In this document: one piece after another, positions 9,570 through 63,250 of the stretch
Layout: each line of letters starts with the position of its first letter
Numbering within the stretch: the first letter of the stretch is position 1
NCBI RefSeq assembly: GCF_033153115.1
Contig: NW_026889762.1
Span: 3,286,001-3,350,000 of the forward strand
Length of the DNA stretch: 64,000 nt
Direction: 5' to 3'
Source: Saccostrea echinata
Taxonomy: Eukaryota
Notes under the pieces: model-generated
Told to the model about the DNA's origin: nothing
Seen by the model: the letters and a program-made list of their open reading frames with translations, nothing else
Databases searched by the model: none
Made by a program: the position numbers and the translations under genes

Positions 9570-11255
9570 TGTGGCTTTGTGTGGGGTCAACCAAAAAGGT
9601 CAAAAGGATCAAAAGAAATGATTTGGAATGCAAAGTTTTACATAGAAATATATAGGAAAAATCTTTAAAAATCTTCTTCTTAAGAACAGCAAAGCCATGA
9701 TAAGTCATATTTATATGGAAGCATCCTCAGGTAGTGTAGATTCAAGTTTGTTCAAATCATGACCTCCGGGGGTAGGGCGGGGCCACAATGAAGGATCAAA
9801 GTTTTACATAGAAATATATAGGAAAAATCTTTAAAAATCTTCTTCTCAAGAACAGCAAAGCCATGAGGCCAAAAAAATAATAGTCTTGTTTCCTGCTACC
9901 CGACCTACCCTATTTTTTTTGCACCCAACCCTAAAGTTTTTTTTTTAAGTTTTGGAAGAAAAAAAATCGAGAATTTCCGGAATTTCATCGTTCTGTCACC
10001 GTAATCAGTTTTCGTGTTAGCACAAAACAAGCATTTCATGAAATTCTTGTTTTAAATATGGGCTTTCATAAAATACCACTTGAGTTTTGCATAAAAAGAC
10101 ATGAAATTCAATTTTAAAAGACAATATTGACCTGTGACATGTTTAATTTTATCTTGTATTAGTTCATATCCAAAAAATGCTGTCAGAAAAAAAATAAAAT
10201 AAAAATATAAAATAAGATAATTTTCCTACCTACCGACCCTATTTTTTTCAGGCTGGTAGCAGGAAACAAAACTATTATTTTTTTTTGGCCTGACGAGTCG
10301 TAATTATATGGAAGCATCCTCAGGTAGTGTAGATTCAATTTTGTTCAAATCATGACCCCCGGGGGTAGGGCGGGCCTCAATGGAGGATCAAAGTATTACA
10401 TAGAAATATATTGGAAAAATCTTTAAAAATCTTCTTCTCAAGAACAGCAAAGCCATGATGAGTCGTAATTATATGGAAGCATCCTCAGGTAGTGTAGATT
10501 TAATTTTGTTCAAATCATGACCTCCGGGGATAGGGCGCGGCCACAATGGAGGATCAAAGTTTTACATAGAAATATATAGGAAAAATCTTTAAAAATCTTC
10601 TTCTCAAGAACAGCAAAGCCATAATGAGTTATTTTTATATGGAAGCATCCTCAGGTAGTGTAGATTCAAGTTTGTTCAAATCATGATCCCCGGGGGTAGG
10701 GCGGGCCACAATGGAGGATCAAAGTTTTACATAGAAATATATAGAAAAAAATCTTTAAAATTCTTCTCAAGAACAGCAAAGCCATAATAAGTCATTTTTA
10801 TATGGAAGCATCCTCAGGTAGTGTAGATTCAAGTTTGTTCAAATCATGACCCCAGGGCGTAGGGTGGGGCCACAATGGGGGATCAAAAGTTTTACATAAG
10901 AACATATAGAAAAAATATTTCTTCTCAAGAACGGAAAAGCTATGTTTAGTCATATTGATATGGAAGCATCCTCAGGTAGTGAAGATTCAATTTTGTTCAA
11001 ATGATGACCCCTGGGATAGGGAGGAGCCACAATGGGGGATCAAATTTTTACAAAGGAATATATGGGAAATTTTTTTTAAAAAATCTTCCCAAGTACTATA
11101 AAACCATTTGTTATAATGACATGGAAGCAACATCAGGTAGTTTAAAATTCAAGCCCCCCCCCCCCTCCCCCAGTAATCATTTCAATACTGAACTGATTTG
11201 TGCTTTTGCCTAGCCAATGTGCTCAGGTGAGCGATGTGGCCCATGGGCCTGTTAA
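9570..11255 (+). repeat. Array of ~166-bp satellite (Cg170/HindIII-like) carried by a Helentron/HINE element
   Basis: Seven units marked by gaagcatcctcaggtagtgtagattcaa at about 9718, 10311, 10476, 10642, 10806, 10963, 11124. Ends in ctcaggtgagcgatgtggcccatgggcc (sub-terminal motif plus hairpin). Family name is from recall, not a search. Confidence 0.8.
9867..10290. mobile_element. 424-bp MITE (PIF/Harbinger-like) inserted in a satellite monomer
   Basis: ~35-bp TIR ggccaaaaaaataatagt..tgtttcctgctacc and 3-bp TSD TGA. Removing it restores the ~166-bp period. Confidence 0.85.
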
Positions 11256-37461: not shown

Positions 37462-40400
37462 ATGGCTGGAGGTGTGTTTCACGTAGAATTCGGAATTAAC
37501 GACACGGTGCTGACGCGAGCTCTTGAGAACAGGAAGTACTCGGTGGCAGAGACTATAATTAGGGAGAACACCAATCCGTCCTATCTGGATGAAGGTAGCA
37601 CTTGAAGTACATGTTGAATACCAGCAGTAATATTGTCAAAATTTAATACTTGTTTTTAACATAATGAAATGTTTAATATAATTTACAAGATTAAGGTAAC
37701 ACCTGTAATTAATATCAGATCTTTGTTAGATTCTTTGTGTAGTTATCTATCATGAGGGAAGTATGTATAGAACAGTTATAAATTGCAACTCATAAATTTA
37801 CATCACCACTGTCAATGTATCATTGGTATCCTGTAGATTTTTTTTTTTATCTTTTTCAAACAATTTGATTTTGTTTAAGGCTTGTAAAAGAAAATTCCCT
37901 CCTCCCATTTTTATTTCAATTCTTTTTTGATTCTGTTACATGTACTGTATAGACTGTTAAGAGAGAAATTCCTTGCTTATATAGCTCTGATTTACTACAG
38001 GCTTTTACCAGAGAACCCCCCTGTTTATGTGTCTCTGTTCTATTACAGGCTGTTACCATTGACCCCCACCACTTAATATGTCTCTGTTGTATTACAGGCT
38101 GTTACCAGAGAACCCCCCTGTTTATGTGTCTCTGTTCTATTACAGGCTGTTACCATTGACCCCCACCACTTAATATGTCTCTGTTGTATTACAGGCTGTT
38201 ACCAGAGAACCCCCCTGTTAATGTGTCTCTGTTCCATTACAGGCTGTTACCATTGACCCCCACCACTTAATATGTCTCTGTTCTATTACAGGCTGTTACC
38301 ATTGACCCCCACCACTTAATATGTCTCTGTTGTATTACAGGCTGTTACCAGAGAACCCCCCTGTTAATGTGTCTCTGTTCCATTACAGGCTGTTACCATT
38401 GACCCCCACCACTTAATATGTCTCTGTTCTATTACAGGCTGTTACCATTGACCCCCACCACTTAATATGTCTCTGTTGTATTACAGGCTGTTACCAGAGA
38501 ACCCCCCTGTTTATATGTCTGTTCTATTACAGGCTGTTACCATTGACCCCCACCACTTAATATGTCTCTGTTGTATTACAGGCTGTTACCAGAGAACCCC
38601 CCTGTTTATATGTCTGTTCTATTACAGGCTGTTACCATTGACCCCCACCACTTAATATGTCTCTGTTGTATTACAGGCTGTTACCAGAGAACCCCCCTGT
38701 TTATATGTCTGTTCTATTACAGGCTGTTACCATTGACCCCCACCACTTAATATGTCTCTGTTGTATTACAGGCTGTTACCAGAGAACCCCCCTGTTTATA
38801 TGTCTCTGTGGTATAGATGAAGAACAGCAAACAGTTCGGCCGAGGAATCTATACTTAGCCAGGCTTCTGGTGGAAAATGGTGCTAATGTCAACTATAGGG
38901 TGCCCATGGTAATGATTTCTTTAACAGCTCAATGACAATCAATTTTCATTTTTCAGAATTGTTTTAAAATTTATAAATTACATTTGATTATTAGATCAAC
39001 TTTGTATTTCTATTCTATGCATCATCAGCCAGCATTACTAGAAATTTCAAGTAGCTAAATATGATGTATTGAGGTTGCTTGACTAAAATAATTAAATAAT
39101 CAAGAACAAGTTTTTTCATTTTACTTTTAGACATTTGGGTCGGAGTATGAGGGTCCCGGTAAGAGTCCGTTAGAGCTACTGACCGACTTCTACAACGATC
39201 TAACCAAACTGGTCCATCCACACAGCAAGGAACTCTGGTAAGCACAATTAATATCAATCAACAGACAATATTGTATCAAATTGGATACAAGTTTAACCTG
39301 AGAAATAATTCTTTAATTTTAAGATGAATTTTTTTTTGAGTAACCAAGTAAGTAGAAATAGAAGTTTTTCCTCTACAAGTCCTATTAGGACTTTGCTTAT
39401 TTTACTTTTTCATTGAGCAAAATTGAGTCTGCACTACCAACGGAAGCTAGCATATTTATAGTATTAATTATAGACATGGCTTTCAGTTTTTCTTACTTAG
39501 AAGAAATCTTTTTTCATGGGAAATTTCTACTATTCGATGTCTCATTTAAACTTAGACATTGAAATTCTTTTGCCTTGAAACTTTTGAAAACTTAATTAAA
39601 TTTGATATACCAAATATATCTTGGTCAAATATTCAGATATCTGTGATTCTATTTTATGTAAACAGCAAAATCCCATAGAAATTGGATAGTTAAACACAGA
39701 AATTACCCATTCAAGTGTAATGAATAAATGTAACATTGGTGTCCATTTTTTTCCCTCAGGAGTGCCCACCACAGTCAGTGGGACCTACAGAGTGATGTCG
39801 TTATTGGACTCAACAAACAGTACCTCACCACTCCTGAGGAGGTGACTCAGCATGTGGAAGATCTCATTTTCATCATCATCAGTAAGTCTTCATCATCATA
39901 AAGTCGTCATCATTATCAGATAGTCATCATCATCATCAGTAAGTCATTAGCATTAGTACATTGTCATCATCATCAGTAAGTCATTAGCATTAGTACATTG
40001 TCATCATCATCAGTAAGTCATCTTCATTATCATCAGTAATTCATCTTCATCAGTAAATCATCATCATCATTATCAGTAAGTCATCATTTTCATCATCATC
40101 ATCATCATCAGTAAGTCATCTTCATTATCATCAGAAAGTCAGCTTCATAGTCATCAGTAAGTCATCATCATCATCAGTAAGTCATATTCATTATTATCAG
40201 TAAGTCATCTTCATTATCATCAGTTAGTCATCATCATCATCAGTAAATCATCATCATCATCAGTAAATCATTTTCATTATCATCAGAAAGTCAGCTTCAT
40301 ATTCATCTGTAAGTCATCATCATCACTATCATCATTATCAGTAAGTCATCATCATCATCATTAGTAAGTCATGTTATCATCAGTAAGTCATCTTCATTAT

Positions 40401-43351
40401 CATCAGTAAATCATCTTAATATTCATCAGTAAGTCATCATCATCAGCAGTAAGTCATCATCAGCAGAAGGTCATCATCATCACTAAATCTTTTTAATCAT
40501 CATAAATAAGTTATCTTTTTTCATCATTTGTAAGTCATCTTCATTTGTCTTGAGGAAGGTATCTTTATTGTCATCACCAGTGAGTCATCTTCATTGCTGT
40601 CATCAATTAATCATCATCAATATCTTCTTTTTCATCAACACAAAAACATCATCATAGTCATCACGATTGTCACTTGATTATCTCTGACTCATGATGAAGA
40701 TAATCTTATTGTCATTTCTTGATACTTTTGTATCAGCTTTTCCATATCATTGCTAACATTCAATTGAGTGATTTATTAGAAGAGTTTTAAAGGTTTGATA
40801 ACACACTCTATTTGAATTAAAAGTTAGAAAAGTTGAAAAGGATTCAAATTTTCAACAAAAATACAGTATTGATGGGAGCTCTGTCTTTCTACTGAATACA
40901 TAAAACAATTATAACATTGGTGAGTTAAGTTGTCTTATTATCTTGTTGAATTATCTAGGTCATGGAGGGGACATCAATATCTGTGATGAGACAAAGATGA
41001 CCCCGCTGCACCGCACTGCTATGTCATCTATCGACACTCATCTGTTTAAGCTCCTGTGTGACAATGGAGCTAACATAAATGCTGTGGATGGTCGGGGAAA
41101 CTCACCACTGCTTGCAATGTGTGACGTTGTAGGGACAGATGATTACGATTTTTTTGAGGACTGGTCAACAACGAGTGATGACACGTATGAGGATAGCAGT
41201 GCCACCTTGTGTGTACAACATGATTTCCTGGATTATATGTTGTCACTGAAAAACATTCAGGTACTCAGAAAAATAGAAACTAACTTCAGGTGATATTGGT
41301 TGTTGAAGGTAATCCAACATTTATTGTGCAAGTTTTACAATATTCTATAACTTCAAAAATTTATTGCTGTGAACCATTTATATAATGTAATTGTATATTT
41401 ATACTGACTGTTCACTCAGTCAAGAAAACTGATAGTTGCAGATGGATTTCAAACTAACAAATCAAGTAAAAGTTGTCATGAATATTAGTTGGTGCACAGT
41501 AATGAAAGTTGGTTTATAGTAAATATCAATACTGCTGGAGTCTTAATACACAATTTTATGATGTGGAAAGCAACATTTTTGAACGATTATCTTAAAATTG
41601 AAAAAAAAAAATATGTAATCTATCAAAAAATCTTTGTGGAGGCCAAAGAAAAATTCTTTGGAGAAAATAAAAATTAAATGATTAAATGACAGAGTACTGT
41701 GAGAGGTAAAATATTGATGGCCAGATATGATTTTTCCTTCATTTAGTTTCTTGACATTATGAAGAAATGCATCAACGTATTTTATGGTCTAAAGTGTAAG
41801 GTAATCTGATCAATTTTCTAGGTAAACATAAGTAATAACCGTGGTCAGACAGCTCTGTTTCACTGTGTCCTGAGGGGGGATGTGCTGGCCTGTCAAAAAC
41901 TGCTAAAGGCAGGGGCGGATCCATCAATTAGAGGAACGGTGTGGGAAACCAGGAAACGCAAGAGGTGGGAAAAAATAAGTTTTCTTCAATAAGTTGCTTA
42001 GGGTTTTAAACTTATGTGTATGTACATATAGACAATTACATGAAATGTATAATGTACAATTTAGTGCAAATACGATAGCTTATTTCCAAATTTTCATGAT
42101 AGATTTACAGAACTAGTATATGCATGTATGAAAAATTTAGTTCAGTTATATTGTAGATAAGATCTTTTGCAATCTTTTTCTTTAACTTGGTGCTTAGATA
42201 TCACTCAGGATTCATATTATGTAATTGTTCTTTTCATATTTCAGGAAACTGTCTCCGATTTTTGTGTCATTTTTATCCATTCCTCTCCAAAGAGCACTTG
42301 GCTTCCAGAACACATATCACCTACTGGCTGGCGCTCCTCAACAGTACGCTCACTTAGTGGACGCAGGTAAGAAAGTACTTATCATTGAACACATATCATC
42401 TACTGGCCAGCGCTCCTCAACAGTACACTCACTTAGTGGACGCAGGTAAGAAAGTACTTATCATTGAACACATATCATCTACTAGCCATGCAGCGCTCCT
42501 CAACAGTACGCTCACTCAGAGGATAAAAAATTACTTATCATTGGGCATAATGTATATTGTACATACATGTATTGATTTGTCCAACTACAAGTACTTATTC
42601 AAATATTGATAGATTAATGGCATGAATTCAAAATTATTAAGAAGTTTTTTTTGTGTGAAAATAATGTAAATGGTACTAAACAACCTTTGGGTCAAAGAAA
42701 CCTGTTGCAGTTCTACAGCTGAGCATTTGGTACAATGTATTAGAATTGTCTCTAGAGAGAGGGAGTGGGGAACATCTGTAGCATTATGTAGGTCATTTAT
42801 ATAATTTAATGTAAATGTTACTTTTAACAGGTTACTTCAACAGGAAAGAGATCACAGAGGAAGTGAAAGAACTGCTAGACAACGAATTTCCAGAATTTGA
42901 ACACTTAAAAATAGTTTCTGACAAATTAGTGAGAATGATGTGTGGTCGAACCACAGCTGGACTAAGACAACTCGCAACACGGACAATCTTTAAACAAGTC
43001 TTCCTTCAAAGTACCAAATCTCTGGGAAAACTCCTGCCATCGACTTCAATAAAATCCTGTCTCAAGAATGCTGATCTCCGTCAGATGGATGTTTATGATG
43101 AGTACATCAATCTGGTTCTGAACCGGACAGTACTTCAGGCTCTGGTTGTTCGGCTGGGACTTCCCGGTGATTCTCTGGTGAACTTTGAGGTGGAGCTCTT
43201 CCTCCACCAGATGGCAAGTCGGTTCTCCGGATTTAAGGTGGTTCCCCCCGAGAGTCCGTACAGTGGTGAGAGTGGAGAGAGTTCTGTGTCAGATGACAGC
43301 GATTTGACCAGTAGCCAGGACGAGGGGGATTCTGACCTTGAGTATTGGTAA
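37462..43351 (+). CDS. Ankyrin-repeat protein, possible SOCS-box-like C-terminus and acidic tail, 528 aa
   Basis: Exons 37462-37594, 38772-38908, 39131-39237, 39760-39881, 40959-41260, 41822-41964, 42245-42366, 42831-43351. All GT-AG, phases consistent, 1587 nt. Ankyrin motifs RTPLF..LLVENGANVN, GKSPLEL, MTPLH..LLCDNGANINAVDGRGNSPL, GQTALF..LLKAGADPS. Confidence 0.88.
37990..38808 (+). repeat. Tandem array of acceptor site plus exon start (46-49-bp units, 16 decoys and the real exon)
   Basis: Units start at 38001, 38049, 38098, 38146, 38195, 38243, 38292, 38341, 38389, 38438, 38487, 38533, 38582, 38628, 38677, 38723; the real exon starts at 38772. Each is preceded by tacag. Confidence 0.95.
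39871..40660 (+). repeat. (CAT)n-CAGTAAGT array derived from an exon end plus donor
   Basis: The exon ends ttcatcatcatca|gtaagt and is followed by about a dozen cagtaagt copies plus variants, separated by (cat)n. Confidence 0.92.
42308..42543 (+). repeat. 79-bp tandem triplication of exon end plus donor
   Basis: Units at 42308, 42387, 42466; donors gcag|gtaaga at 42367 and 42446; third copy degenerate. Confidence 0.95.
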
Positions 43352-44405
43352 CCAAGAGTAATGTCCCTTCTGTATTTGTTCAGAAATGATAATTATACAC
43401 ATATTTCAAGAGCTACTGTGGCCATATATTTGAGTGTTAGGTAGTGTGCACATATATTATTCTCATATTTTTGCTTTATCTAGAATTTTGCTCTAAATAG
43501 TTCATGAGGAGTACATGATACTAAGTAACATTTAATTCTATGTAGTGTTTTTGACATAAACCGTTTGTGCTAAAGTAAACACTGCTTATTTCTAGATGGA
43601 TCAATTTATATACATGAACAAAGTGACAACTAACACAAGCATTGTCAGTGCTTTCTTACCCAAACATTCATAAATGCCATGATTTCACATTTTTATCTGT
43701 ACAGTTGCTATTTGATTGCTGTAATGTATTATATAATCAGAAATATTTGTTAGTGTGAGCTTTAAATCTTTGATGTATTATTTGATTATGACTTTAAATG
43801 TTGTGTAGAGTTATGGCCCTTTAATTGTAACAGTTTGTTTGAATGCCAGACATTTTCATTTTTGTTTATTCCCATATTTGTTAAGATGAGTGATTCTGTA
43901 ATTTGTTTTATATATATTAGCATTTAAGAATGATAAACGTAATGTTTTATACAACAGTGTGGCTCAAAAAAGAGGTCCCCCCTTTTTATGTGTATATGCA
44001 CATATATTATTATGTTCTCTAAAGTATTTTGTTTTTCCTGGCCTGTTGTGCTGAACATCTCTCATTTTTATCTGTCCATCGTTCTGCACTTGGTTTTTTT
44101 GTGGATGGTAATCAGGTTTTAGAGTCTATATTAGATATACAGTAATCCTTGTTCAAACAATATATGTATAATCATTTTGTACATATAATAGGAATTTTTT
44201 GAACTACTTCATCAGACTTAGACTGGAATGACATTTTCTGATGTTTTTAAATTCTACTTGTGCTTCACCTAGTAAAGAAACAATATATTCACATACATTG
44301 CATAGACTTAAAAAATATTGCCCATGTAAGATGATGCATGTACAAGGTTTTTTTTTCTTCTATGTTGCACTGTATGACTATGTACAGTGGCGGATCATAT
44401 TATTT

Positions 44406-44581
44406 CAGTGAAACCTGTCTAATCCGAAATGCAATGGGAGACTAAAGTTTTTGCTGAACAAACAGGGTGTTGGATTATACAGTGTAAAGAACATGAAAAA
44501 TAGTAAAATGGGAATGAAAATATTTGTTGAAGTTCATAGAGAAATGGATTGCACAGGTTTCAGACTAGACAGTTTTCACTG
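44406..44581. mobile_element. Short Tc1/mariner-type MITE
   Basis: cagtgaaacctgtcta ... tagacagttttcactg|ta. Confidence 0.65.
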
Positions 44582-46443
44582 TACAAACAAAATGATATAT
44601 GTAGCTCAATTGAAGTTTAATTTTGCACAGGTCTTACTAATTAGTATCATAAACCAAAAAAGATCAACATTCCATAAAACATCATTGTTAATTTTATTTC
44701 ATTAAATGTTTAGAACTGTCCTTAAGATCTGAGCTAAGAACCAGCTATGAAGTATGTTACAATGCTGAGATTCGCATTGTCTCTATTTACTGTATACTTG
44801 TATGTTCACTGTAATATGACTGCTCATTTTATGGAATTCTTAAACAAATCCATAAAGCTATGTAGCAAGGTACATTTAGGTATCTGTTATGTGTGAGAAA
44901 TGTATTTAAAATGCTTTCATTTTTTAGGCTAGATTATGAATCAGTTTATCTGCTCTTTATATGGAAATTTTTCTCCCAGTCTGTACATGTATATTAATCC
45001 ACAATATAACTGCTTCTTTATTGTGTCACTGTTCATTGGATAACTCCCAAACTTTGCATGTCAACAACAAAAGAAAAGTTAGGAATTGTATCCTTTTGGA
45101 TGACCTTGGCCTTAATATTTGACCTTGAGAAAAAAAATCTTTGTTGAAAAAAAAATCTGCAAGATAAATATAAAATTTCATAGAGATAAATTAAGAAAAG
45201 GTTTAACAGCTGGTTAAAATTAAAAATAACCTTCATTCCATTCAGTATCTTTTGATTTTAATAAACTTGGGATAAAAGCATGTTTCATTGTAATCAGTTA
45301 CTACTATTCTAAATCGTTTTTCATGTTGTATAACATCGATATTTTAATCCTCAAGTAAACATTATTTTTAATATTCAGTCTTTTTCATAACCAAGAATAT
45401 GATTTTTAATTTGATCTCCACTTTAAAATATGAAAAATATGTGTACCCATTTGCCATGTGTTTCAGAAATTGTTCAGACTTCTACAGTATTAAAATATAA
45501 CATAAACTATCCACACATCTGCACAATCCAACAGGAATTCGATATATTAGTTTATACTTTATATTTTTTATTCAAATCAAAATACATTTAAAAAAAAAAG
45601 AATTTGACATAGATCTTCTGTAACAAATCTATCATTAATAAGTATAAATTACTGGTATGATAAAATAATTTTTTCAAAGCAGCTTAGCTGAGCAAATATT
45701 ATCCCCCCTTTTTTAATTACCCTTTTAATGCTGGTTTTGTTTTTCCCGCTCTTATGTAGATGTTTGTTGTTTTTGTTTTACACTTTTGAATCTAGACATA
45801 TCAACTTCACAGTCTGACAAATGACAAACTTTGTTATATTTTGTTTACTTTTATTCCAAATGTAATTTTGTGCTAAGTAAATAATGATTTCAAGTTATTG
45901 TTTTGTTTTTCATACTACAAGTTCTAAAACAAAATATCAAAGCATATAATAAATGTTAACACAGTTACCATAAAAACCACAACTTGTGGATGGAAATTTC
46001 CTTATAAATTCAATACAAGTACAGTAAAATTTATTTAGTATGAATGGTGATGGGCAATCAGATTTTTTTTCATAGTTGATTATCCGAATAATCGGATGCA
46101 CTATAATTGATTGATTTCAAATATAAAATTTGTTGAGTTTTGAATGAAGAAAAACTTGGTAAAAAATTCATTGATGATTTCTAAAATGTACTTTTGATGT
46201 ATTTTGAATCATTGGATTCATTTATTAAATTATTACTTTGGATTTAGTTACATTCAAAGAAGAATGAATACAGAAATCATACTAGGAATAATTTGCTTTT
46301 ATTTAATAGATTGATTCATTATCAAAATTATAATCAATTATCTATAATCGGGGGCCATTTTGATTAGCTAATCAATTAATTGGTACACCAAGTAGGAACA
46401 TTGATATTGCAAATTTACAGTTCCTTGTGAAATTTTACAGCTA

Positions 46444-46621
46444 CAGTTGAACTTCGGTATCTCGTACATGGACATCTCGAATACCATGGATATGTCAAAG
46501 TGATTAGGTAGTCCTAACCACTTATTTTTTTAAGTTTTTTTTACCCTCAATGTCTCAAACCCCCGAATATCTCAAAGTTTTGTTTCAGTCCCTGCGAGTT
46601 CGAGATAAACAGGTTTGACTG
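46444..46621. mobile_element. Tc1/mariner-type MITE, copy of 36727-36902
   Basis: ta|cagttgaacttcggtatc...aggtttgactg|ta. Confidence 0.8.
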
Positions 46622-47368
46622 TATAACAAACTTGAGTTATAATGAATTTATGGATATAAAGGTATTGATTTTTTATCCTGTTGAGGTAAAAAATAATGAA
46701 GTTTACATCTTTTCCAAATTTTTGAATTCAAAAACCATTGTTTACATTCTAGAATTTTTAGCTGCAGGGCACATGATGTGGTGAAAAAATGGTTAACAGT
46801 GATGTTTTTGGTAAAACAATTTTATTTGACATTACAAACAACATTACATAACATTCACAATCTTCAGAACTTTGTTCTAGCAATTAAAAATGTTTTGTAC
46901 AAGATATAGTTTGCAGGTCACAGTTAGAAATAATGTCTTTACAATGATCAGAACGAAAGATGCACCAATTTACTTAGAGATACAATCAGAATGAAAGATG
47001 CACCAATTTACTTAGAGATACAAACAACTGCAACTTACATAAGGGGAGCACTGCTTGAACTAGGACTTGCATAATTTTGTACATATAAAATATTATTTTA
47101 TGTAATTTAGAACAAATCTCTGTCAGATACAAGATTGCCTACCTCATGTTGTCTACAAATATATATTATGAATGTACCTATAAAGCCTTAAAATTATAGA
47201 TTCTTTAATCACAATCAAAACAATGTTTACATTTTATAATTGACCAAGATTTAAATCAAGGTAAATTTTTTTTTAATGTGTCAAGAGCAGTATAAATCAA
47301 GTTCTCTTTACTGACATGAAAGATTAAAGAAAAATCATATTACTTTTTGAGAATCATTCATACAAAAA

Positions 47369-48409
47369 CAGGGTTCTCCATCATTTCAAATTTAACTGTG
47401 GTGCAAGACTTATGCGAAGTGCTAATATTTTCGTTCAATTTGCGACCGAATTCGCGAAGGAAGCACGAAATTAAAAATTAAAAACACACAACCCCAATGA
47501 ATCAATAGTTTAATATACAAATGATATTTATTATTTGGCATTATTATTATTATTAAATTTAATAATAAATGTAATTAAACGATATCGATTAAACATAGTG
47601 TAAAACAAAAATTAGGATGTTCCCAAAATTTATAATGCATACTGTGAAAAAGCCCCCCCCCCCTTTCCAAACACATACGTACTTATAAATAAACAAATAT
47701 TACCTTATAAATCTGAAAATAAAAGTACCAGTAACAACAAGCTCAAAGCATTAAACCCTCTTTAAAAAAAGTTTACAGAAGTAAATTATATAGTGTTCAT
47801 TAGAGAACAGAGGAAATTCTGGTAAGTTACACAATCACTCTAACATCTATATAAATTTGCAATTCTCAGTCTGAAGACTGAAATATCTTAAAATTTGTGA
47901 ATTAAAAAATACTTAAGCAGCAGTTCAGAGTCATAAAATAATATTTTGTTGGATCTCTCGTTAATTTTTCAACATTGCAAAAATACATATTACGATAAAC
48001 GTGCGATGTTTGACACACAGACGTGGTTATCTGTAGAAGTATTGAAACATAAGTTAATTAATATTCAAAAATTTCATTTACAATTAACGTGAAATGTGTG
48101 GAAAAAATGGCTTGTTTCTTTTCATTCAAGTGTCCAGCGAGGTCTAGAAGATAATTGCTTGTGCAAGCCAAACAATGGGCCCTAATTAGAGTAAATTAAC
48201 GGTTTAGCATTAGAAACTGAAAAACGGTACATAATTTGAAGGATTATTTGGTTTATAAATTTATATAGCTATCTTACTGACGAGGACGATCTTACTGTGG
48301 CGCTAATATTTTAACTGTGGCGGAACTATGGCGCTGATTTTTTAACTGTGGCGCAAAGGAATTTAACTATGGCGGGGCCGCCACGTTCAACGGCCCATGG
48401 AGAACCCCG
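47369..48409. mobile_element. Non-autonomous hAT-like element
   Basis: TIR cagggttctccat / atggagaaccccg, flanked by aaaaa on both sides; subterminal actgtggcg repeats. Confidence 0.65.
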
Positions 48410-48577
48410 AAAAAAAACCTGAATTATGAATCGTAAAACAACCATTACTCCAAAATCAGATCAATTTATTTACATAAAATGTAATTACCCGGAATGCAAT
48501 ACAATAATATTCTGAGCTGTAGACCTATACGCATTTGCATGTGGTAGTTATTCACACAAGGCTTTGGAAATTTAATA

Positions 48578-48792
48578 CTGTAGATCACCCAATTTTCAAA
48601 CCACCACCTTATTTTTGCAAGAAAGTCATACAGTATTTTTTTATTGAGACAAACTTGTAATAAATTCAGCTTATCATGCTTATTGTTTAATCCTTCATAA
48701 TAAAACATATGCGAAAATGAAATTTTTGCAAGAAGACAGTCTCACCTAATTACGCGAAAATAAAGTTCTTGGGAATAAAAAGTGATTTACAG
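48578..48792. mobile_element. Short degenerate MITE with TA TSD
   Basis: ta|ctgtagatcac ... gtgatttacag|ta. Confidence 0.55.
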
Positions 48793-49418
48793 TAGAAGAT
48801 ATCTATTTTTACACATTTATATTATACCATTAAGACAATGCATCAGCCTTCCATTATGGTACAATTTACATTTTCTTGAACATTGTTGAAATGCCTTTAC
48901 ATAAATGTACATTGTACATGTACACAGGCCTTAAACTGACAACAACACACACATAATACCCCACCCACATTCAGGTCCTTCATTTCTCCATAACATTTGG
49001 CATACATGTATAAGAAGGTCACACATGCACTGCACTTGACATACATCCAAAATCTTATGCACTAATTAGTTAATGATTTTTACACATATGCCTTTTCTGT
49101 ATCTTACCCTCATGTTAGCACTTTACAAACCACTTTACAAACCAAACACAATCCATCCCTAATCTTACACTAGTATTGATCAAGCTGAAGTGTAAGCATA
49201 GAAATAACATATCTTTATTCCCTATATTTATCTACATCAGGCACTCCTTGAATGACTCTCGCTCTCTTAGTATCCATCTGTGATAGCTGTGGGTAAGTAT
49301 CCATGATCTTTGTCATAAATTCTTTGATTCTCGTCTCTATTTACACCTCAATTCCAACTCTCTCTCTAAATTCCTAGATCCACTCCATTTATTTACACTC
49401 TAGATCTTCCCACCAATA

Positions 49419-52400
49419 CTACCTAAGTGAGGGTAGATTTATAGTTATGATGGACTCCGAGTCAGTTCCACATAAGAGAGTCTGTGATTCAATGTCTATG
49501 GAGTTTACAGGGAGAATGTTGTCGTCGATTAGAGAATTGATCTCCATTTTACTGTTGTCTGTACACAGCCACTTGTTAACTGTCTCACTTCCTCCAAACT
49601 GGAATGAGGGATTAACGGAGAAATTCGCTCCACCAGAACCAGCACCTGTCACATAGAACAATATTGTTATGACCTCCACTACTGTGTATGTGTGTTTTTT
49701 TTTATGTACTTAATAGGAATTTTTGCATTTTGGTATTCCTACTCATCACATATCATCAAATAGATACAAGAATCTTTTAAGGCATGCAAACATTCTCCAA
49801 CTTCTTTAAAACATGCAAACACTTCTGATGTTTGTGTCATGTATTTTTAATATAATAAAAGCACAAGCAGCATATATGTTGTTTTTTTTTTGTTGTTGTT
49901 AATATTGCACTTTAAATCTAATATCTTTAACTACTTCTTGTATAACATTGAAAAAAAAACAACTCTGGAATTATCCGATTATTTTTTTGGATTCCTCACA
50001 CCACATACTCCCCCAAAGCTTTACATGTTTGTCCAGAATCATCAGTTACACCAGAAAACCATTACATACCTGTACCTGTGAGTTGTGTTTGTACCATGTG
50101 ACTAGAACCAACCAATGAGGAGTCCCAGTGCCACACAGCGCCATCTTCTGAGCAAGTGAACAGGTGGTCTGAGTTTGTCTTGTGGAATTTGACTTCCCAC
50201 ACTACAAGTATATAAGTATCAATCGTTAATGTATTAAATGTGCAGATGTAAAAAAAACAAGAGGCCCACAGGCCACAGTTTGTCATGCGAGTCACATTTC
50301 TCTTCCTGACAAAAAAAATATGCTAATAACTGAAAGACATTCACTCATAAAAGTTTTTTTTTAAGGATAATGATTTGCAAAAAGGAAATCTAAATTTTGA
50401 TTAAAATTTGAACAATTTTAGCATACTTTGTTGTGCAACATTTGTCAGAAAATCATTTAACTTGACATTTATAAAGAGTAACAGTAACTTATCCATTTGA
50501 GTTACTCTCTTATCAGAGGGATTTACAGAACATTTAAATTTAAACTCTCCAAACTGCTACTCACTGGGACCACTGTGGGCCTCTAGGAGAGAGACGGGGG
50601 ATCCCTCCTGTCTAAGATCCCAGATCCCCAGCACCCCATCACGACTTCCTGTGGCCACAATGTGGGGCTGTCCTGGGTGTCTGTCCACACAGTGCAAAGA
50701 GGTCAACTCCCCACTCCTAAAATAGTATGGATTCATTAACTCATGAGAAGATCACCTCAAAACACACAAAAGTTGTGTCTTAAGTGACATAATGTGATTT
50801 CATTATACAGATAGTCACATGCTATAGTTTCCTGTAGATGTACATGTATCATTATTTACTACTGTTGTAAATCTGTTTCACTTAAAAATTGCCAAACTAT
50901 TTAGATAGTGAAATCCATCTGTAATCATGGTAATGTATAGTCTGGTTCTAACAATGAATGTTATTACACAGAATCATAAAAGAGAGGTCACCTTTACACC
51001 AATTAGTCTGTGTACTTACACTGAGAGGGTCTGTGAGGGGGCATCTGAATTCGATCGGAGGTCAAAGGTCTTCAGTTGCCCTGACGAGTTGACAGTTATG
51101 ATTTCTGTGTGTTTCAGGAATATAACATTGTTGATAGTTGAACTGTCTGCTTTTTCTGAAGGAAAGAGAATCTTCGTTAAATTGATGCACTTTTTGAACA
51201 GCTTTGTTTGGTTAATATACATATTTATTACCTATGACTCGTTGAGGTGTCTTCTATTAGTTTTACTTACCTATGACTCATTGAGGTGACTTCTGTTTGT
51301 TTCACTAATTTATGACTCATTGAGGTGACGTTCTGTTAGTATTACATACCTATGACTCGTTGAGGTGACTTCTGTTAGTATTACATACCTATGACTCGAT
51401 GAGGTGACTTCTGTTTGTTTTACTTACTTATGACTCGTTGAGGTGACTTCTATTAGTTTTACTTACCTATGACTCGTTGAGGTGACTTTTGTTCTGCATT
51501 AAGTATCACAAGTCTCCCATCTTCTCCTGAGGTGACTATAGTTTTATCTCGCACAGCTAGACATGTGCAGGGACATAAATGGTTGCCATGGTGATGAAGC
51601 TTCTCCCACTTATTTGTTATTCCTAATGTCTAAAACATTATACACAACAAATTAATCGTAGAATGAACTAAAAACTGAGCATTGGAGGATTAGGAGAAAA
51701 AAAATGGGCTAACACTAGTTTCCTCTTTCACGTTTAACTTTGATAGACTGTATAATTTAAAATGGTGTAGCATTATTATTTCTTCTCTTATACACTGTAA
51801 TTGCAGCGTTCTTTCTTCCTTACACAACTGGTTCTGATAAACGCACAGGCGCTTGACGTTTTTAACCTTTCTTTCCATAAATAAAAAATCCCCCATACTA
51901 TAATAATAACAAGGTTCGTCACAGTCGCCATCTTGAATTTTTCAGTTCAGCTACTCCGCCTCGATTTTTAGTCTACAATGTGTTTAAAATTAACGGATAC
52001 AACCGTTTCCCTCAAGTACTTACTTTAACTATGCCTCCACTTTCGGGCAATTCAACTCAAATCACATTAAATCCTCTCTAATTCTTAAAATGTCGCTTCA
52101 AACTCAGTCTACTGCTACCGATTCCGTGAAACTTAGAAAAGGGAGGCCGGAAGTTGATGTTGTTATGTAAATGGGAATTCCCTCTACTTTAATTTCATTG
52201 GTTAAAAGAAATATGACGTTTCGCGGGAAAATTCATGCAAAGACAGTAACAAACTTTTTCGACATGTTGAATGCTGAGCAGGCCGATTGCTTTCCATAAA
52301 CATCAGAAATAATATGTGAAACATTTTTTTTCTTTTATTTTGTTGAAGAAAAAATCAATTATTCTTGGTCCTGGAATTCTGGTTACTAATTTCTCATGTA

Positions 52401-61754: not shown

Positions 61755-63250
61755 ATGAGACGTCACTTAACCGGCTTTGAGGCAGCCCAAGCTATAGATA
61801 TGCTTCAATCTGGCAATACTCAGAAAACTGTTGCTGCACACTTTAATGTGTCCCAAAGTGTCATTTCACGATTATGGAATCGATTCCAACATACTGGTAC
61901 CGTTGCTGAGAGACCACGTTCTGGTCGTCCGAGGTCAACCACGGCTCGTCAGGACCGTTATCTGGTCAATATGGCAAAGCGGCAGAGGTTCCAGAGTGCT
62001 GTTAGGCTAAATACAGACTTTCAAACAGCAACACGAGTGCGAGTAACACCACAGACAGTTCGAAACAGACTCCATGAGGCTAATATCCGAGCATTCCGAC
62101 CAGCAGTCCGGCCCAAACTGACGCCAAGACACAGAACAGCCAGACTCCAATTGGCACGAAACCATGTCAATTGGCAACTGCGTCACTTCATGGACCCCTG
62201 TTCTTTTAATTAACAGATGGGTCGCGCTTTTGTGTAGATTTCCATGACGGTCGTAGACGAGTTTGGCGTATGACCGGTGAACGTTATGCAGATTGCTGTG
62301 TTGCTGAGCATGATCGTTTCGGGGGTGGTTCTGTGATCGTTTGGGGTGATATCAGTATAACCGGAAAGACTTACTTGCATGTTATCGCAGGAAATCTTCC
62401 AGGGATAAGATTACAAGATGAGATACTGCACCTAATTGTCAGGCTGTATGCAGGTGCTATCGGTGATGATTTTATTAGTCCCCTACCGGTGAAACCGGAG
62501 GGAACTATAGGTTTCCTCTGAGTCTGTCCGTCCGTCTGTCTGTCCGTCTGTCCCTCTGTCTGTCTGTCAGTCTGTCCCACTTGATTTTCCGCACTTTTTT
62601 TTTCTAAACGCTTGCAGATATTGAGGTGATTTTTGATATGTGATTGTATCTTGATTAGTTAAAGATCAAGTTTGCATTTCGTTCCGCTTCAATGATATTT
62701 GTCGGAATTACTACCTTTTCAATTTTTCAGGGTTTTCCGCATTTTTTTCTAAACGCTTGCAGATAATGAGCTGATTTTTGGCATGTGACTTTACCTTGAT
62801 GAGTCATAGGTCAAGTTTGCATTTCGTTCCGCTTCATTGATTTTTGACGGAAGCATGACATTTTCAATTTTTAACGGGAACCAGATTACACTTGCCGGTA
62901 GGGGACTAGTATTGCTAATGCAATACTCTCAGAATGCTTGTTTTAATGGACGATAATGCTAGACCTCACAGGGCTCGCATCGTAACAGACTACCTGGAAA
63001 AAGAAACCATTGAGCGAATGGACTGGCCGAGTCTTTCGCCTGATTTGAATCCCATAGAACATGCTTGGGACAAGCTACAGCAAGCCATTTCAGTGCGCCC
63101 AGTACTCCCTAGGAACCGCAAGGAGCTTTCTGCAGCAATCGGCGAGGAATGGGCTAGATTGCCGCAGATCTTCTTCCGAGACTTATCCGCAGCATGCAGA
63201 GGCGTTGTCGCGCGGTTATTCAAGCACGGGGTGGTCATACAGCATATTGA
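61755..63250 (+). pseudogene. Tc1 transposase pseudogene
   Basis: Paired-like HTH, RSGRPRSTT, DGSRF (for DESRF), GGGSVIVW, MDDNARPHR, WPSLSPDLNPIEHAW with D34E spacing. Frameshifts near 62190-62215 and ~63180, plus a 466-bp insertion. Confidence 0.92.
62476..62941 (+). mobile_element. HINE/Pearl-like element inserted in the Tc1 catalytic domain
   Basis: Same structure as 53873-54308. Removal restores GDDFILMDDNARPH with no TSD (T^T insertion). Confidence 0.9.

Follow-up and report, generated by a model that had tools for sequence, protein, structure and literature searches.

The question raised by this locus is why the ends of exons should recur, splice sites included, as tandem arrays within the introns that adjoin them. 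The window, a stretch of 64,000 nucleotides from the mollusc Saccostrea echinata (contig NW_026889762.1, positions 3,286,001 to 3,350,000, forward strand), contains an ankyrin gene on the plus strand and a Nup43-like gene on the minus strand, in which an original prediction, made from the sequence, had placed four such arrays. All four were found by Tandem Repeats Finder (TRF) at the predicted places (Table 1): arrays 1, 2, and 3 in introns 1, 4, and 7 of the ankyrin gene, and array 4 in the Nup43-like gene. In each of them, as predicted, the unit combined an exon terminus with its splice site and thereby spanned the boundary of its host exon, with exon limits defined by transcript contigs for three arrays and by a Nup43 match for the fourth, and the extra copies ran into the intron only. 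These arrays are mirage-type minisatellites, with the same structure as the mirages of amphioxus and the variable number tandem repeat (VNTR) of the human F7 gene.

Repeat units at four exon/intron boundaries

Splice junctions over positions 37450-43400 were taken from Logan contigs of four runs belonging to three studies, which covered exon-sized blocks alone and were therefore evidently transcript-derived. These contigs defined seven GT..AG joints in the ankyrin gene, identical in all four runs, by which its 7 coding introns were confirmed and its 8 coding exons joined into a single open frame from the ATG at 37462 to the stop at 43349-43351. The open frame was checked on the joined exons, and database searches were performed exon by exon. 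The gene was identified by Pfam Ank matches (E = 0.007 for exon 2), and when the last exon was searched against the full protein library, full-length relatives were recovered from Mytilus edulis (CAG2212213.1), Batillaria attramentaria (KAK7494831.1), and Sepia/Acanthosepion. The N-terminus encoded by exon 1, MAGGVFHVEFGIN..., is common to the Mytilus, Batillaria, and Sepia proteins, and the C-terminal ...EGDSDLEYW of exon 8 is present in the orthologues too.

Array 1 lies on the acceptor side. Its unit consists of 11 nt of acceptor, with the consensus ...TTGTATTACAG/GCT in each unit, and 37 nt of exon start, which correspond to the first 37 nt of exon 2 and encode residues conserved in orthologues (GCYQRTPL.ICLCG, after ...NPSYLDE). 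Variants A and B of this unit alternate, and a 97-bp A/B dimer repeated 8.6 times (93% matches, TRF) fitted the array better than the 49-bp period. The AG is kept in all 17 copies, giving 17 tandem ...ACAG sites with AG ends from 38000 to 38771, and the acceptor used in the transcript contigs is the AG at 38770-38771, the last of the 17 ...TTACAG/GCT sites. The left edge of the array is the old intron end, ...tagCTCTGatttactacag, its right edge the remaining exon, ...GTCTCTG/TGGTATAG, and the 5-bp direct repeat CTCTG stands at both edges (37985 and 38804), which fits a founder duplication of the microhomology type, through slippage between short direct repeats. The A variant is exon-like and the B variant has an in-frame TGA; the array probably split into these two variants first and was then enlarged by amplification of the AB dimer. 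Among the B units, eight are identical and a further two depart from them by one base, which indicates that expansion was recent or is continuing, and the combination of a higher-order A/B structure with many identical B units shows repeated rounds of expansion.

Array 2, on the donor side of intron 4, is a more degenerate minisatellite of ~30 copies with periods of 17-23 bp (63-76% matches, TRF), of which ~12 nt per unit are exon-derived. A donor scan counted 16 perfect GTAAGT in intron 4, whereas the control introns of the ankyrin gene have 0-1 each; sites that match at 5 or more of the 6 positions number 24 in intron 4. The donor in use according to the contigs is the first GT of the array, at 39882, which is followed by 15 perfect GTAAGT decoys; 12 decoys read TCA/GTAAGT like the real site. 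The end of exon 4 encodes LIFI(I/V)LS, which is conserved in orthologues, and the array would have grown from the ATC/TCA run that encodes this Ile-rich end. Part of the array was independently present in contigs of another study (run X5).

Array 3 has the longest unit, which joins 59 nt from the exon end to the donor and 20 nt of intron and reads GGACGCAG/GTAAGA. The contigs placed the donor of intron 7 at the first GT of the array, 42367, and the exon end encodes AHLVD(A/S)G/(Y/F)F, which is again conserved in orthologues. A decoy CAG/GTAAGA at 42446 (+79) shares its 9-mer with the real site, and the third copy has lost its donor through a 6-bp deletion, so that the donor is kept in two of the three copies. 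In other runs, six variants were seen at the exon 7 end (42284-42333), all but one at a third codon position. Two variants, 42320 C>T and 42329 T>C, match the state of the second, decoy copy of array 3; the match could have come about by exchange of sequence between the decoy and the true exon end, or be an old polymorphism that both share.

The exon that carries array 4 matched Nup43 of Xenopus (E = 4e-7) and human (8e-5) over its whole length, residues ~108-166 (phmmer), and the neighbouring exon at 50560-50736 matched NUP43 with E = 6e-22. Its end, ...CGAGTCATAG/GTAAGT on the minus strand, was inferred from the open frame and the Nup43 match. The unit is made up of the donor with the last ~27 nt of the exon before it and ~12 nt of intron after it; decoy donors lie at +39, +78, +117, +196, and +235, of which the one at +196, TAG/GTAAGT, is the same as the real site. 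One copy is without GT, and the signal is kept in six of the seven copies.

Across the four arrays, exon parts of 37, ~12, 59, and ~27 nt were thus combined with intron parts of 5-20 nt beside the splice site. That the real site is the exon-proximal one, as had been proposed, was borne out by contig joints for arrays 1-3 and is predicted for array 4 from open frame and homology; for arrays 1-3, exon-proximal joints were the only ones seen in the contigs, which drop rare variants and leave minor isoforms invisible. Conservation of the exon parts in Mytilus, Batillaria, Sepia, and Nup43 indicates that the exon termini are old coding sequence from which the arrays were copied, which rules out the opposite order, an older array that gave rise to the exon ends (exonisation). 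A dispersed or transposable element (TE)-borne repeat was also rejected, since own-genome searches of the 923-Mb assembly matched the units of arrays 1, 3, and 4 at their own locus alone, and matches to the unit of array 2 were just generic (TCA)n-like low-complexity arrays with other interruptions. Nor did the arrays resemble recursive splice sites, in which a polypyrimidine tract and AG directly adjoin GTAAGT: by inspection, AG/GT in arrays 3 and 4 follows sequence that comes from the exon and is not rich in pyrimidines, the corresponding site of array 2 is CA/GT, and array 1 is without GT after AG. Metagenome contigs scanned with words from arrays 1 and 3 contained no independent DNA copies.

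The proposed growth of introns was evident from the share that each array occupies: 771 of 1177 nt in intron 1 (66%, remainder 406 nt), 779 of 1077 nt in intron 4 (72%, remainder 298 nt), 179 of 464 nt in intron 7 (39%, remainder 285 nt), and 239 of 311 nt in the Nup43-like intron at 51156-51466 (77%, remainder ~72 nt). The other introns of the ankyrin gene, of 222-561 nt, are similar to the array-free lengths of 72-406 nt, and ~72 nt is near the usual lower limit for introns. Frames read from the sequence predict that decoy use in arrays 2 and 4 would meet TAA within a few codons, that upstream acceptors of array 1 would include B units with their TGA, and that decoy 42446 of array 3 would shift the frame by +1, with a stop then in the last exon. 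The product of this last decoy would probably escape nonsense-mediated decay (NMD) and would be without the conserved C-terminal part. In array 4, the nine donor-core columns were 85% identical to the real unit, compared with 87% for the other columns, and alignments of arrays 3 and 4, very small samples, showed no selection signal on decoy cores; as far as such low numbers allow a judgement, the decoys seem to have been neither protected nor purged.

Two kinds of additional repeat were observed in the window. Intronic stretches at 37649-37855 and 41430-41594 were matched by low-depth contigs (runs X1 and X4) that continued into 255 unlike letters, and are probably fragments of a dispersed repeat in introns 1 and 5. 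Large tandem arrays at 2078-2599, 10291-11069, and 62597-62872, with units of 145-166 bp, lie away from the studied junctions; the one at 10291-11069 had a TRF score of 1103, compared with 1111 for the 49-bp row of array 1.

Table 1. Positions of the arrays and of the exons and splice joints of their host genes, numbered from the first letter of the window
Feature	Position	Strand	Evidence
Array 1, acceptor-side junction minisatellite	37985..38809	+	TRF, period 49 x17.1
Array 2, donor-side minisatellite TCATCATCATCA/GTAAGT...	39870..40660	+	TRF 39870-40482/40541, degenerate copies to ~40660
Array 3, 79-bp unit x2.7	42308..42545	+	TRF 42308-42523, 91% matches; alignment; donor scan
Array 4, 39-bp unit x6.9	51224..51493	-	TRF, 87% matches; minus-strand reading; donor scan
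Ankyrin gene joints	37594/38772, 38908/39131, 39237/39760, 39881/40959, 41260/41822, 41964/42245, 42366/42831	+	Transcript contigs
Ankyrin exon 1, coding, ATG 37462, donor GT at 37595	37462..37594	+	Joint 37594/38772 in contigs of 4 runs
Ankyrin exon 2, encodes (G)CYQRTPLFICLCG..., ankyrin repeat start	38772..38908	+	Contig joint, Pfam Ank, orthologues
Ankyrin exon 4, ends ...CTCATTTTCATCATCATCA (LIFIII), donor GT 39882-39883	39760..39881	+	Joint 39881/40959
Ankyrin exon 7, ends ...AHLVDA(G), donor GT 42367-42368	42245..42366	+	Contig joints
Ankyrin exon 8, coding part, last coding exon, stop 43349-43351	42831..43351	+	Contigs, open frame
Nup43-like exon, ends ...AEQKSPQRVI(G), inferred donor GT 51466-51465	51467..51629	-	Open frame and phmmer
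Next Nup43-like exon (KADSSTINNVIFLKHTEIITVNSSGQLKTFDL...)	51020..51155	-	Open reading frame, consensus acceptor and donor in sequence

Donor and acceptor arrays across the genome

We estimate at ~0.04-0.16 the probability, for each array, that a founder of 20-79 bp placed at random within the two genes includes a junction; arrays at junctions in four cases out of four depart far from such randomness. The choice of the window was, however, made after the fact, and the grouping of four arrays within two neighbouring genes may partly be a post hoc pick, so that the weight is carried by a whole-genome test. For this test, the whole assembly was searched for three exact copies of an 8-mer spaced 10-40 bp apart, with the same pattern read backwards as a control. 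The donor word AGGTAAGT gave 424 three-copy matches against 97 for its reversal, and 19 against 5 distinct arrays (contigs C1-C12), with 37,609 and 48,687 single occurrences, respectively. For AGGTGAGT, there were 247 against 230 matches, the reversed count being dominated by two huge satellites, and 21 against 7 arrays (C1-C29), with 16,307 and 17,497 single occurrences. Each of the two donor 8-mers is less frequent in the genome than its reversal, and the excess of donor arrays after normalisation was 4.9-fold for AGGTAAGT and 3.2-fold for AGGTGAGT (binomial P = 4e-4 and 4e-3, respectively, for array counts against single-word ratios).

No acceptor-side excess was seen with the one acceptor 8-mer searched across the whole genome, TTTTCAGG, which was matched 38 times at 10 loci and its reversal 59 times at 19 loci, without single-word normalisation; the looser acceptor consensus leaves this null result with less power. 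Array counts for donors and acceptors differed (Fisher P = 3e-4). These results demonstrate that donor junctions are over-represented in the minisatellites of this genome. The proposed enrichment at junctions therefore held for donors, with 3-4 times as many arrays genome-wide as for the reversed 8-mers, but did not extend to the acceptor 8-mer, and a statement about splice junctions in general is too broad on these counts.

When eight AGGTAAGT arrays were inspected with their flanks, five began where an open frame with an acceptor before it ended, one lacked a preceding open frame, and two were ambiguous; one of the open frames matched the end of a PH-GRAM (MTMR6-like) domain. If ~30% of AGGTAAGT words are assumed to be real donors, the excess per real donor is roughly of the order of ten-fold, with a wide margin in view of the small controls. 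One of the reversed-motif control arrays (G000:C1:52404024-52404472, 40-bp unit, TGAATGGA) has CAGGTGAGT in every unit and may thus itself be donor-derived, which would make the control count conservative.

Several individual loci were recorded in the course of these searches. On the contig of the window, ~78 kb before it, a AGGTGAGT array occurs in successive 41-bp units (G000:C13:3208411-3208541), and junction-type arrays may cluster regionally. Two large donor-motif arrays, one with a 44-45-bp unit in >40 copies and the other with a 24-bp unit in ~25 copies, lie 14 kb apart on opposite strands (G000:C9:1535568-1537463, plus; G000:C9:1551597-1552198, minus). At G000:C17:4956121-4959559 (positions ~1340-2050), a ~700-bp (ATGATGATGATTATTGAGTT)n array abuts the acceptor ...GATTACAG/GACGGGGG of an exon that encodes ...LEGHQLGVVSVD..., which we take to be a WD40 sequence of the WDR61-like type. 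The unit of this array is without exon sequence, and the array is therefore best described as an intronic minisatellite next to a junction, not as a clear mirage.

Origin and retention of the arrays

The account that we favour, as a probable one, is that the arrays are minisatellites born at their own loci by junction slippage and kept since splicing holds to the exon-proximal site, themselves without function and with longer introns as the outcome. A boundary-spanning segment (48, ~20, 79, and 39 bp in arrays 1 to 4) would have been tandemly duplicated where short direct repeats allowed slippage or template switching, after which further slippage or unequal exchange would have enlarged the array. 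Splicing would have stayed with the site joined to the intact exon, that is, the first donor or the last acceptor, as seen for three arrays, and as long as this site is used all extra copies are intronic and removed. Decoy use would be costly, as it is predicted to lead to a stop codon or a frameshift, and the copies would be functionless by-products, visible as intron growth and as a stock of spare splice sites. In support of this, decoy cores are as diverged as their flanks and one decoy each in arrays 3 and 4 is without GT. Other observations weigh against it. A purely neutral model in which arrays are tolerated anywhere predicts even sampling, and the whole-genome donor counts are uneven; since tolerance leaves junctions at most as array-rich as other sequence, it fails on its own to account for the donor excess. 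With 30% real donors assumed, the excess is ~10-fold per donor, and gene-richness plus protection from deletion would plausibly give less. Arrays also occupy three of the seven introns of one gene, which is above what the genome-wide rate would lead one to expect, and minor use of decoys is possible, the contigs being blind to rare variants. The DNA of arrays 1, 3, and 4, finally, is known from the assembly alone, and the same point speaks for an assembly artefact, or a dispersed (TE-borne) satellite that lies at junctions by chance. The resemblance of array 2 to other (TCA)n-rich arrays could be read in the same direction, but the ordered variants (A/B dimers, diverged copies, and indels) are not produced by collapse or expansion errors, part of array 2 recurs in contigs of another study, units 1, 3, and 4 are locus-unique, and the unit sequences are those of the adjoining conserved exons, so that an artefact or stray satellite is very improbable.

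The donor excess could instead originate from a mutational process that favours 5' splice junctions, through transcription- or splicing-coupled pausing, breaks, and slippage, with tolerance merely filtering the survivors. Donor arrays that outnumber reversed-motif arrays by 3-5 times after word-count normalisation, and the clustering of arrays within single genes here, agree with such a bias. However, founder boundaries lie 12-59 nt into the exon and 5-20 nt into the intron instead of at the junction, array 1 resembles ordinary microhomology slippage, the acceptor 8-mer is without excess, and the per-site estimate uses an assumed share of real donors. The original prediction had put forward splicing- or RNA-coupled breaks, to which nothing in the present analysis points, and a mutational preference for 5' junctions seems unlikely. 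It had also suggested that decoys tune productive splicing against NMD. A donor-specific excess and the large number of full-consensus decoys (15 perfect GTAAGT in array 2, the identical 9-mer in array 3) would fit a selective benefit related to U1, whereby tandem U1/U2AF sites next to the real site would make exon definition stronger, inhibit premature cleavage in introns rich in AT, or fix the ratio of productive to NMD-bound mRNA. Yet conservation of the decoys' donor cores does not exceed that of the remaining unit, and certain cores show decay or deletion; the arrays vary widely in unit sequence, unit length, and copy number (2.7 to ~30); the contigs of three studies, which are blind to minor isoforms, contain exon-proximal joints alone; the decoy stop of array 3 would fall in the last exon, where NMD tuning does not fit; and the decoys of F7 are silent and non-competing (PMC1557585). 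Maintenance of the arrays by selection is accordingly quite improbable. That 5' splice junctions are true hot spots of minisatellite birth or retention, by about ten-fold per site and through some junction-linked mutational or selective force, is a broader proposition that we consider possible but doubtful.

The arrays are a mollusc instance of an already named structure. They constitute natural experiments in splice-site choice, in which the real site faces as many as 16 equal acceptors or 15 equal donors and the exon-proximal one wins, and they show that introns can triple in length within a gene. In practical terms, such arrays mislead gene predictors and can yield false alternative isoforms. 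A genome with frequent mirages makes their unexplained origin testable, and the value of the observation would rise with a genome-scale frequency and donor bias established against annotation. If junctions were true hot spots, arrays seeded at them would rank among the main drivers of longer introns and of turnover of splice sites, and would be more than the occasional curiosity known from amphioxus and F7.

Mirages, the F7 repeat, and routes of intron gain

The original prediction knew of no named system of this kind, but two published ones match. In amphioxus, Ebner et al. described mirages as minisatellite-like duplications of exon/intron boundaries that leave splicing undisturbed (PMC3087553). 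Both 5' and 3' boundaries can be duplicated, in units of 10-160 bp, AG/GT is kept in many copies, and copy number varies between haplotypes; their mode of generation was called unclear, and they may seed new introns (PMC3087553). Cases include Adh3, troponin C, the globins BflGb6 and BflGb9, and PGBD5 (PMC3087553, PMC3902484), of which troponin C and PGBD5 were added by the second study (PMC3902484), and the term itself is credited by these two papers to work on Adh3 (Canestro et al., 2002, Nucleic Acids Res 30:2871). The human system is a 37-bp VNTR in intron 7 (IVS7) of F7, of which the first unit contains the exon 7 junction (PMC1557585). There are 5-9 identical donors, only the most upstream is used, and mutagenesis showed that the pseudo-sites work once those upstream of them are destroyed (PMC1557585).

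The arrays of the window share with amphioxus mirages the boundary-spanning unit, a unit length within 10-160 bp, the occurrence on 5' and 3' sides, the retention of AG/GT, normal splicing, the presence of several per gene, and a proposed role in intron evolution. They differ in phylum, the proteins of the window being closest to mollusc proteins. For the amphioxus Adh3 mirage, moreover, length and somatic instability are shown, whereas the mollusc arrays are known from the sequence of one assembly. Full-text literature searches, of incomplete coverage, returned no mollusc mirage reports and no genome-wide enrichment tests; a rough whole-genome count with a donor bias is now available for the mollusc genome, and no such analysis was found for amphioxus. 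With the F7 VNTR, arrays 2 and 3 have in common a real donor followed by identical pseudo-donors, with their joints at the first GT. The F7 repeat is a single polymorphic mammalian locus tested by mutagenesis, whereas the present arrays are documented by sequence and contigs, and array 1 differs from it in lying on the acceptor side, with the last site used.

Two routes of intron gain are related more distantly. In the Rogers model, in which a tandem duplication containing AGGT gives rise to an intron (PMC3265369, PMC4974935, PMC2891723), extra splice sites likewise arise by duplication and the duplicate becomes intronic. The new intron is, however, formed inside an exon, whereas here an existing intron is lengthened, at an unchanged position, by up to ~30 copies. 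Introners (PMC9860276) similarly add intronic DNA as sequence that brings its own splice sites. They are dispersed over many loci, whereas the arrays described here consist of locus-unique units copied from the adjoining exon.

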